Shown here piece after piece: positions 500 through 18,087 of a DNA stretch of 32,000 nt. Each line of letters opens with the position of its first letter. Position 1 is the stretch's first letter. The translations under genes were made by a program, and so were the position numbers. Below the pieces are notes generated by a model, which was not told where the DNA came from, searched no databases, and saw nothing but the letters and a program-made list of their open reading frames with translations. Source of the stretch: Wallemia ichthyophaga EXF-994 (lineage: Eukaryota > Fungi > Basidiomycota). Location: the NCBI RefSeq assembly GCF_000400465.1, contig NW_008806286.1, positions 143,865 to 175,864 of the forward strand, given 5' to 3'.

Positions 500-1744
500 T
501 TACTCCAGCTCATCAATCTCGATCGGGACTTCTTCTGCAGCGTATAGGTGCGACGACGGAGACCAGAGCTGGACAATGTTATCCTCACTCCCACTCATCA
601 GCGTGAACGGCAGAGTTTTCGACCAAGCTATGTCCGTGATAGCGTTAGTGTGGCCCCCATGCATAAACATGAGTTCTGGAGGACCGTCTTCGGCATCCTC
701 CGGTGTCTGCTCCTCGCCAATGCGGCTGATATCCCACATACACACCCTTCTGTCATTCGACGCAGATGCAAATACCGTCTCTGCGTGCGGCGACCACTCG
801 AGGTTGAGCACATCCTCACTATGTCCTTCAATAGTGTGTAGGCGTTTGCTGAGATTTCTCAGATCCCACAGAGCAATGGTCTTGTCTGCGGATCCAGTCA
901 CACAGAGGAAAGGCTGTGATGGGGAGAAGGCGACGCAGTTTATATCTGCATCGTGAGCTTTAACTTTCTGGTGTGGCTGAGTGGCATCGCGGGTGTCCCA
1001 AGTGAAGAGATGCTGGTCATCGGAGACGGATGCGAATACATTCTCGTGAGATGCGTGCCACGATATGTCTTCCACAGCTGCAGTGTGTCCGCGGTACGTG
1101 TTGAGTGGATCGAGAATGTTGCTCGCTGATTGGTAGTGCGATATGTCCCAATGGCGGACAGTGGTATCGGTGGAAGCGGAGAGAATGTGGTTGGGTTTGA
1201 GAGGCGACCATTCCATACCATATCCCTCCCCTTCATGGCCGCGGAGGACTATTTGTGGGTTGCAAACACCGTCTGGCTTCGGTTTGAGCTCGTGTCTGGT
1301 GCGATCGAAAACGTAAATCGGACCCATCACGGTGCGCGTCGCTATAAGATCAGGATTGAAAGGATTGTAACGCGCCCTATTAACTTCACCATCGTGGTTG
1401 ATGGACTGTACAATCTCAAGCTTATTCGACGCGCTATAACTGCCAATTTCGCCCTTGTCTTCTTCAAACTTGGCAGGATCTAAATCGTTGGATTGCTTTG
1501 GGAGTTTGATGTGTGCAATGTGAAGGAGGTTCTGCTCGATATTTGAGGTATTTGTACCGATAAGAAGTCTGTGTGTCGTGTAGGATTTATCGGGGCTGGA
1601 TTCGACATCAGGGAACCACTGGCATGTGAGTGTAGGCCATTCCAATGTATGCGATAAGACTAAATCATATAATAATGGCGCGTGTTTCTTCCATGTTTTG
1701 TACTCCTCGTTGATTGTCTTTGAATGTTCTTCGTCGGTGTCCAT
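500..1744 (-). CDS. RBBP4: Histone-binding WD40 protein of the RBBP4/7 (HAT2/MSI1) family, intronless
   Basis: INEEYKTWKK..P.LYDLV..H.LEWP.LT.QW N-terminus, HDGEVNRARY, WD repeats, EDAEDGPPELMFMHGGHT. Start taken at ATG 1744; an in-frame ATG also exists at 1780. HAT2 versus MSI1 orthology cannot be resolved by eye. Confidence 0.95.
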   Translation of the reverse strand: MDTDEEHSKTINEEYKTWKKHAPLLYDLVLSHTLEWPTLTCQWFPDVESSPDKSYTTHRLLIGTNTSNIEQNLLHIAHIKLPKQSNDLDPAKFEEDKGEIGSYSASNKLEIVQSINHDGEVNRARYNPFNPDLIATRTVMGPIYVFDRTRHELKPKPDGVCNPQIVLRGHEGEGYGMEWSPLKPNHILSASTDTTVRHWDISHYQSASNILDPLNTYRGHTAAVEDISWHASHENVFASVSDDQHLFTWDTRDATQPHQKVKAHDADINCVAFSPSQPFLCVTGSADKTIALWDLRNLSKRLHTIEGHSEDVLNLEWSPHAETVFASASNDRRVCMWDISRIGEEQTPEDAEDGPPELMFMHGGHTNAITDIAWSKTLPFTLMSGSEDNIVQLWSPSSHLYAAEEVPIEIDELE

Positions 1745-1878
1745 GATGGTGGTTTGGGGTTGAGGAGGGAATATTTTCATTTATATTTTATATTTATATT
1801 TATTATTCATATTCAAGTTCCTCTTAACAAACCACCATCATCTGTCTATAATTGTCTATCTAACTATCAATCAATCAA

Positions 1879-2613
1879 ATGACTTTATTAAATTCAAATA
1901 TTTCAAATACTTCAAATATCTGCCCCAAGTGAGTTTTATTTCTTTTGCTGTTCCACCTCTAACAATTCACAGCGACGGTAACCTGAGCTCAGCCGTCTCG
2001 ATGGGGCATCAACAAGGACAAGACGCTCAAAACCAGGCAAAAACTCAGTCACAAACTAAATGCCTTATCGATGGTACTATCACTCACTCTTACTCACCTT
2101 GCTCCTCCTGGCAACCCTGGGACGCTGGACCAAAGTATCGCTTTTGACGTCGGCAGGAGAGCTTCCACCCCCTCAGAACCACTCCTTTCACAAGACGTTG
2201 TTAATCTTGATAACATTCCGATATCTCCGCCACATTCTCCTATCTATTTCACAGACGTCATTGGAAATTTCCCAGATTTCCTCAATGTTACCCAGTATAG
2301 TGGTATTATCGAGGTGGATTTTGCTAATGGGGAGTTTTGGAGGGGTGTCCTAAGCTCAAACCCCAGTAACTCTCTTTTGATGGAAAAATTTTCATGGAAT
2401 TCAACTCAACACCTCAGAGAAGACCTTGTCGCTTTATTAGAATTGGGTCAAGTACTTGATACATCAAATCTCATCATTATTCTCCCAAAATACATTGAAA
2501 ATCTCACTCAGCTGATTCATTCTTTCTTTTACGTTGGTGGGTCTGTTATCGACCTGAGTAAAACAAATTGGAATTTGAAAGATGGTTATATAGGTGTAGT
2601 TATGCAAGTTTAG
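1879..2613 (+). CDS. OAZ1: Ornithine decarboxylase antizyme, expressed by +1 programmed frameshift (ORF1 exons 1879-1928 and 1973-2144; ORF2 2146-2613; ~229 aa)
   Basis: ORF1 (74 aa after removing intron 1929-1972) ends ...GPKYRF-stop at TTT TGA. The +1 frame continues DVGRRAS... and contains the antizyme core LREDLVALLELGQVLDTSNLIIILPK...IHSFFYVGGSVI. Confidence 0.9.
2139..2148 (+). other. Antizyme +1 ribosomal frameshift site CGC-UUU-UGA-C
   Basis: The ORF1 stop TGA (2145-2147) follows TTT. Skipping T2145 gives GAC (2146-2148), in frame with the antizyme domain. UUU-UGA is the shift site known from Agaricomycotina antizymes. Confidence 0.88.
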
Positions 2614-3334: not shown

Positions 3335-6300
3335 ATGTCCAACGTCATTCTCAGTGATAGCAACACGAAAACTTTAAAAGAATGGTTGGATTTCAGTGGC
3401 GCATTTGGGGATATAGATTCCCCACTAATTGATTCTGTTCTCGTCAATGATACCCGTCAACTGAAATCAACGGTACACAACTCACACAACAATCTACCCA
3501 CCAGCAACCTAATAGACGCTGTAATAGCCAGGCTATTTAAACTCAACAGAAAACCCACAAATATTCTCGCTCTCGGTTATCGAATGGCCGATGAGAAGTC
3601 TGATAGACTAAAACTCGATAGCCTCAGACCGGGTATTTCTAATTTCTACATAAACTCGAACATTTCCTGGTTCTTATCTCCTCAATGGAAGTTTCTACAT
3701 GGCGTCATTGGCGATGATCACTTCTTTGACCTCTTAACTAGCACTTGCCTCTTTTTGAAACTTGAAAACGGTTGCCTGGCGCAGGTTGCTGGCACTCCCG
3801 TATTCTACGATAACAAGTACAAGCTCAATAAGCCAGCCCCAGCTAAACCTTCCCAAATTGCCATCGCCAGACACAGACTCTTCTACGGTCGACCGCTCTT
3901 CTATTCAACAACGAACAAGGTTTACGCTATTGGTCTGCCTACTACGCGTGAGTCTTGTGTGATTCAACATGAAATCACCTAACCATCCTCAAGACGTCCT
4001 CAACAGACTCGAAGGCAAGGTAAACAACTTCACCGCCTCTCCACCCCTCTACCTTATCGCACATATATTTCCACACCAGCACAAACTGCGTAGCATGTTT
4101 GACGCTGCAAATGGCATCACCATGTCTTACAACAGATTGATGCGCGATGCAGAGATTGAAGTAGGTGAAGATTTTCACAAGGTTACATCTCACACTTCAC
4201 TCCTTATAGGCCTCTAATCCACACACCCCCACGCGTCTCAAGCAAACTCAAGTCCTGTTCCAGCGCATGCTCACTCGTCATTTCAATTTGGATTACGTCT
4301 CTGTACTTAAACGTCACTGTGCGAGCAAGACTAGAGGGCGCAATATAGACATGACGCAGTACATGGATGATGATTTCGTTCACATGTCGGAGCATATCCA
4401 AACACAAAGTCAGTTAGACAAAGACACCACCCTCGCAACGCAAATGTCCAACCAGAGTGATGTAGTACCCATACCCTATCGCCCGGACATTAAAGCTCCG
4501 CCGTCTTTCCAGGATCTTCAATGTGGGCATGGCGAGGTGAAGGCATTCGCTAAGCATGTCTTGTCAGACATTATACCTGGGGAGTTGTTCGGTTCTACGC
4601 ACAACAAGTTGAGGATATTCGATAGTGTTGACGCCTTCATCAGTATGCGCAAGTACGAGACTCTCACGCTGCACGCTCTCGTCCAAGGACTGCAGGTGAA
4701 CGACTTCAAATGTTTCTATTCTGCTCATTACAAGCAGGAGAATGGGCGGAGTGAGAGGATTCCCCCAAGTGAGCAGACCAAGGTGACACAGGTTGTACTC
4801 GAGTGGATTTACTGGATATTCGAGGATCTTCTCATACCATTGTTGAAGGTGTGTACGAGGATTTATTATATAACCCCTCTCTCCCCCTCTCTCCCTTTCT
4901 CACTATTTCGCACCCTCGCTAACGAACCCTTTCACAGAACACATTCTACGTGTCGGACTCCTCCGCGGACAGGAAACGCACGTACTACTTCAGACACGAC
5001 GACTGGCTGCGCGCCACCGCGCCGCTTCTGGAGCAGCTCTCGAGTAGCATTTTTGAGCGAGCGAGTGAGGATCTGGTGAGTGACATCTGAATTTTATAAT
5101 CGTGTAGCACTGCTCACTACTCACCACTCTCCTCTCGCACTCGCGCAGACGCACAGCTACCGCACACTGCAACCATCCTATGTCCGTCTCATGCCGAAAG
5201 AAACGGGCGTGCGACCGATAGTGAATTTGCGCAAACAGAACTGGGTCGATGATGACCGGCTTGGTCACAAAGTCGGTTACAGGCGGGGTCTATCCATCAA
5301 CCATATCCTGCGATCGGCATTCGATGTGCTCTCGTACGAACGTCTGCGCCAGCCTAACGCTATGGGTGCTAGCCTCCTCGGCGCTCAAGAGGCATTTGAG
5401 AGACTGAAGGAGTACAAGAAGCGGATTATTGGTGGTGCTGGTGAAAGTACCCATCGGAAATTTTACCTCATAAAAGCTGATATACAGTGCTGTTTTGATA
5501 CAATCGATCAACAAAAACTGCTCAATATGCTCGATGAGATAATAAAGGATGATGACTATGTTATTCTGAAACATCACACTCTCGCTCGTCACAATGATAC
5601 GTATAAGCGCACTTTCAAGAGACAGGCTGTACCGGAGTATGAAGAGGAATCGTTCATAGACTACTCGAAGAAGCTGTCCGAAAAGCTGCGCAATACCATC
5701 ATTGCTGACCAGGTAGTCCATCCGCATATAGAAAAGAATGACTTATTGAAGCTGTTAAAGGAGCACATAATGGAAAATCTGATCAAAATTAACAACCGCA
5801 TCTATCGTCAAGCTACGGGTATCCCACAAGGTAGTATTTTATCCACTATACTGTGCAGTTTCTTCTACGGAATGCTTGAGCGGAATGAGATGGAATTCGT
5901 TCAGCAATCACCTTCAGCGTTGTTGTTGAGGTTTATAGATGATTTCCTGTTCATTACTACGGACAGAGAGGAAGCTCGTTACTTTCTTCAAGTATTGCGC
6001 AAAGGGTTCCCGCAATACGGTGCACATATCAGTGACCACAAGACACTGGTCAATTTTGATATCAGTTTCGACGGTGTCGAGACAATCAACCGGTGTCAGA
6101 GACCAGACGACTACTTTCCCTGGTGTGGGATACTCGTAAACTCGAAAACGCTCGACGTAAAAGCAGATTACGGCAAGACATTCGAAACGGATATACGTAA
6201 TTCTTTCTCAGTTGGTGATGGGTGCAGAATCGGTGAGACAGTTGTACAGAAACTGACGCAATCTTTCCAACAGCACGCACATGCACTCTATGCTGATTGC

Positions 6301-6726
6301 AATTTCAACTCGAGCGAGACGGTGAAGCGAAACCTATACGAAAATTACCTAGTGGCGGCTGTTAAGATGGGCGTGTTCTTGACTGACGTGTTGGACTGGA
6401 AGAGGGTGAATGTCGCGTATATTCAACGCGTCGTTGAAAATGTCGTACAGTTTGGCGTGCGATACACCCTCTTTAAAGCATCAACCAAGCAGGGCTCATA
6501 CTGTACTGTGCCGCCCAGACTTATCTACTGGCTCGGCTATAAGGCGTTTGAGAGGGTGCTCGTCAAGCTCATGTCTGATTCTTCCCTCAATAACGCCATC
6601 AGAGCAGCATCGAGGAAGCTGCTCAGAGGTGTCGGTGCTACTGTCAACAAAGGAATCTTCAAGAGGTACCGCACTAACAGAAACCTCAACAGCATCGTCA
6701 AACACTCTTTAAATCATCTTTACTAA
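3335..6726 (+). CDS. TERT: Telomerase reverse transcriptase (exons 3335-3947, 3994-4160, 4210-4848, 4938-5075, 5149-6726)
   Basis: TEN/GQ (NILALGYR; QWKFLHGVIGDD; QVAGTP), CP (LDYVSVLKRHC), QFP, T motif (WIFEDLLIPLLKNTFYVSD...YYFRHDDW), RT motifs 1/2 (VRLMPKETGVRPIVNL), A (KADIQCCFDTI), B' (GIPQGSILS), C (LLRFIDDFLFIT), E (FPWCG). All four introns restore frame. Confidence 0.97.
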
Positions 6727-16861: not shown

Positions 16862-16912
16862 TTGCGCTGTGATGAAAGTCGGAAACCAAGAAACTTGTCA
16901 ACCCCCGCCATC

Positions 16913-18087
16913 ATGTTCACTTCTATTGAATTTGATAACTTTACTATTAAAATAATAGACCAGTTGAAATTACCTAATGAGCTGTCTTATTTGCAAATCA
17001 CTTCAATTGCTCAAGCCTGGCTGGCTATTAACAGGATGAATATTAGAGGCGCACCTGCATTAGCTTCTTTGGCCACTCTGTCTATAGCGCAGAAGGTGCA
17101 CAATACACAGTACGCAGACATACATGCACTTAAGGCAGATATCAAAGAAGCGTGCGACTACCTCTACACATCCAGACCCACCGCCGTCAACCTCGGCATT
17201 GCACTCGATCAAGTGAGGCAATCTGCCGAAATAGATGCGGACGACCTGAACACACTCAAGCAATCTATCATCGACCAATCTATCCTCATCTGGTCTGAGG
17301 ATGTTGAAAGAAACAAGAAAATGTCTGACAATGGCGCAAATTGGCTCATCAACCACTTAGAGTCGACAAACAAGATTGAAAAAGGTAGCAAACTATCCAT
17401 CCTTACTGTATGCAACACTGGCTCACTAGCTACCTCCGTAAGTTGTCTTTTGGGTGCAGTACTGGGTGCACGACTAACGATACCAATGATACACAGGGCT
17501 ATGGAACTGCTTTCGGCATGATCACACGTCTCCACGAGATGGGTAGACTAGAAAGAGCGTACTATGCCCAAACGACTCCTTACCACCAAGGTACTAGACT
17601 GACAGCTTTCGAATTCACCCAGCTGGGTATTCCAAGTTGTTTAGTTTGTGACACTGCTATCGGATCACTCATCTCCAACGGTCACGTGCACGCTGTGACT
17701 GTTGGTGCTGACAGAATAGCCTTGAATGGGGACACAGCCAACAAAATCGGGACTATGCAGTCTGCTCTATTCGCCAAGACATTCGATATTCCTTTCAGTG
17801 TCGTTGCCCCACGTGCTTCTGTCGACCGTAGCCTCCACGACGGGAAAGGTATCCCGATCGAATTGCGAGGGGCGAAAGAGGCAGTGACGGTGCGCGGGTT
17901 GGATACGGAAAGTGGTCACCAAGCAAGTGTGCGTATGGCTCCAAAAGAGGTCGGTGAAAGTGATCTGCATCAGGTTTATAACCCTGGTTTCGACGTCACT
18001 CCCGCTAATCTCATCTCCGCCGTCGTGTTAGAGACGGGTGTAGCTGTGAACCGTGGTGAGAATGTAGATGTTCAGTCGTTGCTATAG
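16913..18087 (+). CDS. MRI1: Methylthioribose-1-phosphate isomerase (intron 17438-17496)
   Basis: IIDQLKLP, MNIRGAPA, SRPTAVNL, LTVCNTGSLATSGYGTAFG, TTPYHQGTRLTAFE, GADRIALNGDTANKIGT, YNPGFDVTP. Confidence 0.96.

Follow-up and report, generated by a model that had tools for sequence, protein, structure and literature searches.

A probable antizyme gene with a UUU-UGA frameshift site and a genus-specific pre-shift peptide in Wallemia ichthyophaga

Do two overlapping reading frames, the first closed by TTT-TGA and the second displaced by +1, make up a single antizyme gene, and which signals would then carry ribosomes from one frame into the other? The question is raised by positions 1879-2613 on the forward strand of a 32,000-nucleotide stretch of the Wallemia ichthyophaga EXF-994 genome (contig NW_008806286.1, positions 143,865 to 175,864), here called the window. 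A preliminary description made from the letters alone had proposed an antizyme gene requiring a +1 shift at UUU-UGA. This proposal was borne out by the layout of the two open reading frames (ORF1 and ORF2), by the presence of the ODC_AZ domain in the +1 frame, and by conservation in four species. We consider it highly probable (about 0.88) that 1879-2613 is an ornithine decarboxylase (ODC) antizyme gene whose expression depends on a +1 frameshift at UUU-UGA.

Frame architecture of the locus

ORF1 begins at ATG 1879, 5' of which lies a stop codon in the same frame, and comprises 74 codons (MTLLNSNISNTSNICPNDGNLSSAVSMGHQQGQDAQNQAKTQSQTKCLIDGTITHSYSPCSSWQPWDAGPKYRF) once a 44-nucleotide (nt) intron, 1929-1972, is excised. 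The intron is an addition to the preliminary description, which did not mention it. ATG 1879 is joined to the rest of ORF1 only after splicing, because the unspliced frame meets a TGA at 1930, after 17 codons. The resulting product of 74 amino acids (aa) is identical, letter for letter, to EOR00181.1 of strain EXF-994. The 3' end of ORF1 reads CGC TTT TGA C, with its stop at 2145-2147, and the +1 frame is open from 2146 up to a TAG at 2611-2613. The 155 codons of ORF2 scored 36.3 bits (E 5.6e-9) with the Pfam family ODC_AZ (PF02100), for which the curated cut-off is 24.2, and a profile of ORF2 and its relatives matched the solved antizyme chains 1zo0, 4zgy, 5bwa and 4zgz (E 2.5e-6 to 6e-5).

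Orthologous loci were found by way of ORF2-like proteins and by way of a syntenic neighbour gene. When the full trans-frame product was used in a word-indexed protein search, a near-identical strain was the sole relative returned; ORF2 alone was then used for an exhaustive search. Two of the loci obtained (L001 and L002) were 98% identical to the window and gave no comparative information. All four Wallemia species compared (W. ichthyophaga, W. mellicola, W. hederae and a fourth species) shared an exon 1 ending in CCCCAA before GT, an intron of 44-50 nt at one position, and an ORF1 of 68-74 codons that ended TTT TGA C with ORF2 in the +1 frame. Introns of 44-52 nt occupied this one position in all five Wallemia-type lineages, the fifth being a more distant Wallemia-like relative (L004). 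The ORF2 proteins of the other Wallemia species were only 45-52% identical to that of the window in a nine-sequence alignment (44-54% by BLASTP). Because the frameshift layout was kept in four species despite this divergence, it is not due to chance.

A single-base insertion or deletion would look identical in one sequence, and the frame break might be read as a pseudogene lesion or an assembly error, a reading with nothing specific otherwise in its favour. The TTT TGA C junction, however, recurred unchanged in three other species and in several W. ichthyophaga assemblies made independently, and both ORFs are intact and under purifying selection. A lesion or error is exceedingly improbable.

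Independent translation of ORF2 from AUG 2071, by leaky scanning or reinitiation, would instead give a 180-aa protein and leave ORF1 as a separate small protein or an upstream ORF. The ATG at 2071 is in frame with ORF2, 25 codons 5' of the shift, and an ATG is similarly placed in W. mellicola. Against this, no AUG was found in the open ORF2-frame stretch 5' of the stop in W. hederae and the fourth species, two of the four, and therefore ORF2 cannot have an AUG start of its own in those species. Variable triplets 5' of the stop, without exception, preserve the amino acid in frame 0 and alter it in the +1 frame, which is thus not under protein-level selection 5' of the stop. In addition, all characterised antizymes use the shift (PMC1874602). 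Separate initiation of ORF2 is very unlikely.

Ordinary splicing could also join ORF1 to ORF2 and make recoding unnecessary, as in the W. mellicola gene model XP_006959604.1. A 22-nt GT...AG pair at 2135-2156 (GTATCG...GGCAG) does restore the frame, and the equivalent excision in W. mellicola yields exactly the 223-aa protein of NCBI and JGI. An intron of 22 nt would, however, be less than half as long as the gene's five real introns (44-52 nt); its donor, GTATCG, is non-consensus, and no fitting branch site accompanies it. The excision would also remove the codons Y-R-F, which are invariant in their amino acids and show synonymous-only change, as coding sequence does. The homologous site of C. 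cinerea, moreover, frameshifts in reporters that lack a fungal splicing context (PMC4505036). The 22-nt intron is an annotation device rather than biology. In all, 20 frame-restoring, stop-free GT...AG pairs were enumerated. Their donors (GTCTCG, GTCACA, GTACTA and GTATCG) are unlike the real GT(G/A/T)AGT, every one of the 20 would remove codons under frame-0 selection, and none was credible. There is little chance, in our view, that splicing bridges the two frames.

Signals around the shift site

The peptide that precedes the shift had been quoted from the start as THSYSPCSSWQPWDAGPKYRF and assigned to 2085-2144; the peptide is present, and its 21 residues are coded by 2082-2144. Selection on its C-terminal block, WDAGPKYRF, was assessed codon by codon in the four Wallemia species. 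Five of the nine codons were invariant, four varied synonymously and none varied non-synonymously in frame 0, and the same four variable triplets were non-synonymous, four out of four, in both the +1 and the +2 frames. When the full trans-frame proteins (229/230 aa) were aligned, the longest invariant run of the whole protein was WDAGPKYRF-DV, which lies across the shift site and whose length no run in the antizyme domain attains. ORF1 was highly variable in its middle part, and the first ORF2 residues (DV.RR) were conserved too. The synonymous-only change and the WDAGPKYRF-DV run together show that ribosomes read frame 0 as far as the stop and that the recoding site is where constraint is strongest.

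In mushrooms the peptide YYYSTTFSGGP(G/E)WRF precedes a UUU-UGA site (Ivanov & Atkins 2007, PMC1874602); the form given in the preliminary description, YYYSTTFSGGP.WRF, was correct. In C. cinerea this peptide, which spans codons -15 to -5, acts together with module A, the 7 nt G-UGG-CGN immediately before UUU, and its stimulation of +1 frameshifting depends on polyamines (Yordanova et al. 2015, PMC4505036). Aligned with the mushroom sequence YYYSTTFSG--GPGWRF, three Wallemia species read T[HY]x[YF]Sx[SC]S[GS]WDAGPKYRF, and W. ichthyophaga adds WQP. The loss of the Tyr run and the gain of WQPW had been described as traits of this locus. WQP is indeed new in W. ichthyophaga, but WDAGPKYRF is common to all four species, and so, from the sequences compared, the peptide variant belongs to the genus and not to the W. 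ichthyophaga locus alone. The suggestion that it may be a new variant of the sensor seems reasonable.

The Wallemia sequences were compared with 35 Agaricomycete ORF1s taken from the supplement of PMC4505036. Alignment of ORF1 ends across basidiomycete antizymes, a check proposed in the preliminary description, showed ORF1 to be colinear with all 35; a profile of the Agaricomycete pre-shift peptide gave no significant match to that of Wallemia. On a profile of the full-length Agaricomycete ORF1, three Wallemia species and the Wallemia-like relative scored above all 500 shuffles. A metagenome-wide DNA scan with CCNAARTAYCGNTTTTGACGTC returned 11 loci, all of them chance matches lacking ORF context.

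The Wallemia-like relative (L004:1276-2030, also L024-L026) is AT-rich, and its exon-1 end, intron position and downstream zf-C2H2_jaz neighbour are as in Wallemia. Its ORF1 ends ...GYNYYYSTTLDSNKEWLP and retains YYYSTT as found in mushrooms. CCG-UAA-C is the apparent +1 site, and shortly 3' of it lies a second intron, of 50 nt. A CCG shift codon is recorded only for Ascomycota, and the shift sites quoted include none with a UAA stop (PMC1874602). Four metagenome assemblies, independent of one another, have the identical junction, which is therefore not an assembly error. Downstream of the site, in the spliced mRNA (L004:1510-1625), two adjacent 6-bp hairpins (GGGACU/AGUCCC and CCAACA/UGUUGG) can form, the second across the exon junction. 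They loosely recall the basidiomycete 3' double hairpin, lack its conserved motifs, and have a folding z-score of -0.9 in this one lineage.

RNA structure was found in the first part of ORF1. Agaricomycete ORF1 holds a conserved stem of about 14 bp in its first half (PMC4505036), and a two-helix element, consisting of an outer GCCCCA/UGGGGC helix and an inner helix, was present in 41/41 sequences compared. In the window its minimum free energy was -18.3 kcal/mol for the 42-nt element and -20.7 kcal/mol with flanks. Compensatory changes occurred at four pairs; a change from A-U to G-C was common to the four Wallemia species and Dacryopinax, and W. mellicola showed a change from G-C to C-G at the closing pair. 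For the tabulation of pairs each sequence was folded by itself and the folds were lined up on the 5' arm, which has no gaps; the MAFFT alignment (A4) was not used for pair counts, since it places the Wallemia 3' arm one column out of register. Because the exon junction falls inside the 5' arm, the stem-loop forms only in spliced mRNA, and the position of the intron inside it is conserved in five lineages. The 3' arm sequence AUGGGGC (2001-2007) is in frame with ORF1 in 5/5 Wallemia-type sequences, where it forms codon 27 in the window (..S-M-G..), and is a possible alternative start. In Agaricomycetes the same letters are read in a different register, as G-D-G, and therefore the element is conserved as RNA rather than as codons.

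Structure 3' of the site was examined in the four Wallemia species. Basidiomycota other than Tremellomycetes conserve an element made of AAAU and two adjacent hairpins about 19 nt past the site, with UGUGANA in loop 2 (PMC4505036), and this canonical double hairpin was seen in a Sebacinales-like transcript used as a control. In Wallemia, single-sequence folding 3' of the site gave z-scores of -1.4 to +0.5 relative to shuffles, and alifold gave -5.8 kcal/mol with a covariation term near 0; no structure in the intervals +3..+103 and -60..+63 was conserved or significant. A possible GGGACG/CGUCC pairing across the shift site is weak, weaker still in W. ichthyophaga, and would be melted by the ribosome. 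An Rfam scan of 1700-2700 returned only chance-level matches, none of them related to antizyme; the vertebrate antizyme frameshift element was not among them.

What the WDAGPKYRF block does is the part of the question on which the evidence divides. Frameshifting may occur while the block is no polyamine-sensing nascent peptide at all, being conserved instead for the mature antizyme or acting mainly as RNA in the manner of module A. Such an explanation would suit the lack of significant similarity to the tested Agaricomycete signal, the invariance of first and second codon positions, and the conservation of the opening ORF2 residues as well. It would also suit the 5/7 match between the last 7 nt before UUU (G-UAU-CGC in the window) and module A, for which at least part of the effect is at the RNA level (PMC4505036). 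Four third positions, however, vary freely while the amino acids stay fixed, the same signature that was used to infer the mushroom peptide signal (PMC4505036). Constraint is also maximal exactly at the shift site and the middle of ORF1 very variable, and ORF1 has no known role in the core function of the mature protein (PMC1874602). We give this explanation appreciable weight, though less than even odds; a role of the block as RNA or in the mature protein is the main alternative to both of the following claims. The concentrated frame-0 constraint suggests that nascent WDAGPKYRF would act in the exit tunnel as the mushroom peptide does, and on balance we lean slightly towards the block being a nascent-peptide stimulator. 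The narrower claim, that it is specifically a polyamine sensor, falls a little short of an even bet. The most far-reaching version, in which the block and the upstream Ser/aromatic stretch form a distinct polyamine-responsive stimulator working without 3' RNA structure, is rather unlikely.

Several points weigh against the overall interpretation. The occurrence of frameshifting itself we infer from the sequence. A hidden Markov model (HMM) of the last 22 Agaricomycete ORF1 residues (n=35) gave Wallemia only 0.3-2.7 bits, which 11-96 of 500 shuffles equalled (2.7 bits and 11/500 for the window; 0.3-1.7 bits for the other species). The same HMM recognised the GYNYYYSTTLDSNKEWLP end of the Wallemia-like relative at 10.2 bits, equalled by 0/500 shuffles. 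The profile match was not above shuffled controls for the Wallemia peptides, and their homology with the Agaricomycete peptides rests on position and on this intermediate relative, not on the motif. On the full-length profile, the ORF1 of the window was the most divergent, at 4.1 bits with 9/500 shuffles equal. The argument from synonymous sites is supported by four species only, and purifying selection in frame 0 would also be expected if the residues mattered only in the mature protein. Finally, the basidiomycete 3' double hairpin, which contributes to efficiency in other Basidiomycota (PMC4505036), was not found in the four Wallemia species, and neither AAAU nor UGUGANA occurred within 110 nt from the shift site.

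The following mechanism is proposed. After removal of the 44-nt intron, ribosomes would initiate at AUG 1879 and translate the 74 codons of ORF1. While UUU occupies the P site and UGA-C the A site, some of them would shift by +1, either through perfect re-pairing of peptidyl-tRNA-Phe on the overlapping UUU (U UUU GAC) or through skipping of the first U of UGA. In antizymes, UGA-C is slow to terminate. GAC would be decoded next, leading to the 229-aa antizyme, and ribosomes that stay in frame 0 would terminate with release of a 74-aa peptide. Homology with all antizymes tested suggests that shifting would rise with free polyamines and that the product would bind ornithine decarboxylase and direct it to the proteasome, closing a negative feedback loop. 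Both the polyamine response and the role of the peptide as its sensor are proposals. Likely stimulators lie 5' of the site: WDAGPKYRF in the exit tunnel, possibly the upstream Ser/aromatic stretch, and the G-UAU-CGY at the module A position. With no 3' structure, 5' signals would have to carry the whole load.

Coordinates, annotation and neighbouring genes

The features of the locus and the loci compared are collected in Table 1.

Table 1. Features of the antizyme locus in the window and loci used for comparison
Feature	Sequence	Position	Strand	Remarks
Exon 1 of ORF1	Window	1879..1928	+	ATG-led 16 codons plus 2 nt, MTLLNSNISNTSNICP-N; CCCCAA before GT in five Wallemia-type loci; same ATG and splice in EOR00181.1
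44-nt intron, phase 2	Window	1929..1972	+	GTGAGT...CTAAC...CAG; inside 5' arm of conserved stem-loop
5' stem-loop of spliced mRNA	Window	1922..2007 including intron	+	GCCCCAA (1922-1928) plus CGACGG...CCGUC...AUGGGGC (1973-2007)
Rest of ORF1, frame 0	Window	1973..2147	+	Includes UGA stop 2145-2147; spliced 74 codons, colinear with 35 Agaricomycete ORF1s
Pre-shift peptide	Window	2082..2144	+	THSYSPCSSWQPWDAGPKYRF, codons -21 to -1, 21 residues
W. ichthyophaga-specific insertion WQP	Window	2109..2117	+	TGG CAA CCC; in every W. ichthyophaga-type locus compared (window, L001, L008); not in three other Wallemia species
Genus-invariant block WDAGPKYRF	Window	2118..2144	+	Candidate nascent-peptide stimulator; last 7 nt before UUU (G UAU CGC) at module A position
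Putative +1 frameshift site UUU-UGA-C	Window	2142..2148	+	P-site UUU; tRNA-Phe can re-pair on overlapping UUU; next codon GAC
ORF2, +1 frame	Window	2146..2613	+	155 codons plus TAG; predicted full trans-frame product 229 aa
ODC antizyme domain PF02100	Window	2314..2568	+	ORF2 residues 57-141; 36.3 bits and PDB antizyme profile matches
W. mellicola loci	L003, L007
W. hederae locus	L005
Fourth Wallemia species	L009
More distant Wallemia-like relative	L004, L024-L026
Sebacinales-like transcript	L010			Canonical control
Wrong or missing antizyme annotation	L007	1605-2346	-
Wrong or missing antizyme annotation	L008	2098-2366	-
Wrong or missing antizyme annotation	L005	3277-4000
Wrong or missing antizyme annotation	L006	1633-2500

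In every public Wallemia genome examined the antizyme is unannotated or wrongly modelled, the gene being absent, reduced to ORF1 or given a fake 22-nt intron. For W. ichthyophaga, the NCBI records contain the 74-aa product of ORF1 alone, labelled an uncharacterised protein. The W. mellicola CBS 633.66 model (XP_006959604.1 / EIM20347.1, 223 aa) bridges the shift site with the fake intron, and no gene model was found at the antizyme locus in the W. hederae assembly and in one W. mellicola assembly. It had been anticipated that standard annotation would call a truncated ORF from ATG 2071, and an ORF caller did give a 180-aa ORF from the corresponding ATG of a 98%-identical contig (P0001). The 229/230-aa trans-frame products were not among the roughly 15 billion proteins of the collection examined.

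The first 4.2 kb of the window share 99.5% DNA identity with the W. ichthyophaga assembly GCA_004918305.1. NCBI taxonomy places Wallemia in a subphylum of its own, Wallemiomycotina, outside Agaricomycotina. The divergent neighbour of the antizyme gene (500-1780, reverse strand) encodes an RBBP4/CAF1C histone-binding WD40 protein whose closest relative, from W. hederae, is 91% identical; its 90% cluster includes W. hederae, W. mellicola and W. ichthyophaga. The two divergent start codons are only 98 bp apart (1781-1878), and this interval has a GC content of 22% and TATATTT repeats. On the other side lies a zf-C2H2_jaz gene (Snu23/ZMAT2-like), whose stop codon converges on that of the antizyme gene at a distance of only 17 bp (2614-2630), so that the 3' untranslated regions must overlap. 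The order RBBP4, antizyme, zf gene was kept in 4/4 Wallemia species.

A telomerase reverse transcriptase (TERT) gene adjoins the zf gene in the window (3335-6726) and is divided, presumably by introns, into at least three ORFs with RBD, RT and C-terminal extension domains. TERT likewise lies beyond the zf gene in the loci that are long enough (W. ichthyophaga and W. hederae). Further along, two overlapping ORFs in different frames (16862-17521 and 17410-18087) match the N- and C-terminal halves of the Pfam IF-2B profile and are most likely one gene divided by an intron. Members of the IF-2B family include subunits of eIF2B as well as methylthioribose-1-phosphate isomerase, an enzyme that salvages a by-product of polyamine synthesis.

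Comparison with known antizyme systems

Current understanding is not overturned by this locus, as antizyme recoding signals are already well known to differ from lineage to lineage. It is an expected addition to a well-known system, with a genus-specific pre-shift peptide, ordinary in other respects and of moderate interest to recoding specialists. Yordanova et al. saw no similarity of the peptide beyond Agaricomycetes and Dacrymycetes (PMC4505036), Wallemia is absent from the text and supplements of that study, and a literature search pairing Wallemia with antizyme found nothing. An ORF1 of the Agaricomycete type, with 5' stem-loop, UUU-UGA and ...GP.[WY]RF, reaches beyond Agaricomycotina into Wallemiomycotina. 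Given this and the YYYSTT motif in the Wallemia-like relative, the element probably has a greater age than could be concluded in 2015 from a data set lacking Wallemia. The genus also supplies candidate natural variants of the one nascent peptide known to sense polyamines and stimulate shifting, with other residues, a register change of 2-5 residues and no 3' helper. They are ready-made constructs for asking which peptide features the ribosome tunnel reads. If the most far-reaching version set out above were true, Wallemia would provide the case that Yordanova et al. predicted as possible, in which a 5'-encoded peptide is essentially the sole stimulator, and the WQP insertion would be a natural register change retuning the set-point of the sensor in an extreme halophile.

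Among the known systems, OAZ1 of Saccharomyces cerevisiae resembles the system proposed for W. ichthyophaga in its +1 frameshift with UGA-C and in the involvement of its nascent peptide in polyamine sensing (PMC4505036). Its shift codon, in contrast, is GCG, its intrinsic shifting is high, its nascent peptide inhibits rather than stimulates, and its ORF1 shows no sequence similarity. Mammalian antizyme 1 and the Schizosaccharomyces pombe antizyme share with the W. ichthyophaga locus the overlapping ORFs, a +1 shift at the UGA of ORF1, predicted in the latter, and the location of ODC_AZ in ORF2. A GP...aromatic motif just before the shift codon is also common to both, human ORF1 ending in NLGPGPRWCS (PMC5009743). 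The mammalian and S. pombe shift codon is UCC rather than UUU, however, the mammalian 3' stimulator is a pseudoknot, and the known stimulators act at the RNA level (PMC4505036).

Within the Basidiomycota, for which UUU-UGA is recorded, as it is for several other phyla (PMC1874602), the Tremellomycetes Cryptococcus neoformans and C. laurentii resemble Wallemia in lacking both the 3' double hairpin and the YYYSTT peptide (PMC4505036, PMC1874602). Cryptococcus differs in having GUU-UGA preceded by SSFAGGGR(R/Q)W(V/F) (PMC1874602), where Wallemia has UUU-UGA preceded by ...GPKYRF.

Closest to the window are the antizymes of Agaricomycetes and Dacrymycetes, although the differences are clear. In place of YYYSTTFSGGP, Wallemia has T[HY]x[YF]Sx[SC]S[GS]-WDAGP, with no significant profile match; with the WDAGP replacement and the WQP insertion in the window, the distance of the Ser/aromatic stretch from the peptidyl-transferase centre grows by 2 to 5 residues. 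Where module A has the triplet UGG, Wallemia has UAU, and the AAAU, the double hairpin and the UGUGANA loop 3' of the site are lacking. An intron interrupts the stem-loop region in Wallemia, and AUGGGGC is in frame there, out of frame in mushrooms. What is shared runs through the whole of ORF1. The Agaricomycete ORF1 (about 65-75 codons) and that of Wallemia are colinear from M..N.SN...(I/L)CP.N through the stem-loop, A(V/I)C and the Ser/aromatic stretch to GP-x-(W/Y)-R-F. Both have the GCCCCA...AUGGGGC stem-loop with a covarying inner helix, and both show synonymous-only variation before the shift. Finally, Agaricomycetes, Dacrymycetes and the window have in common UUU-UGA-C with Asp as the first ORF2 codon, a site that in Agaricomycetes has been tested experimentally (PMC4505036).

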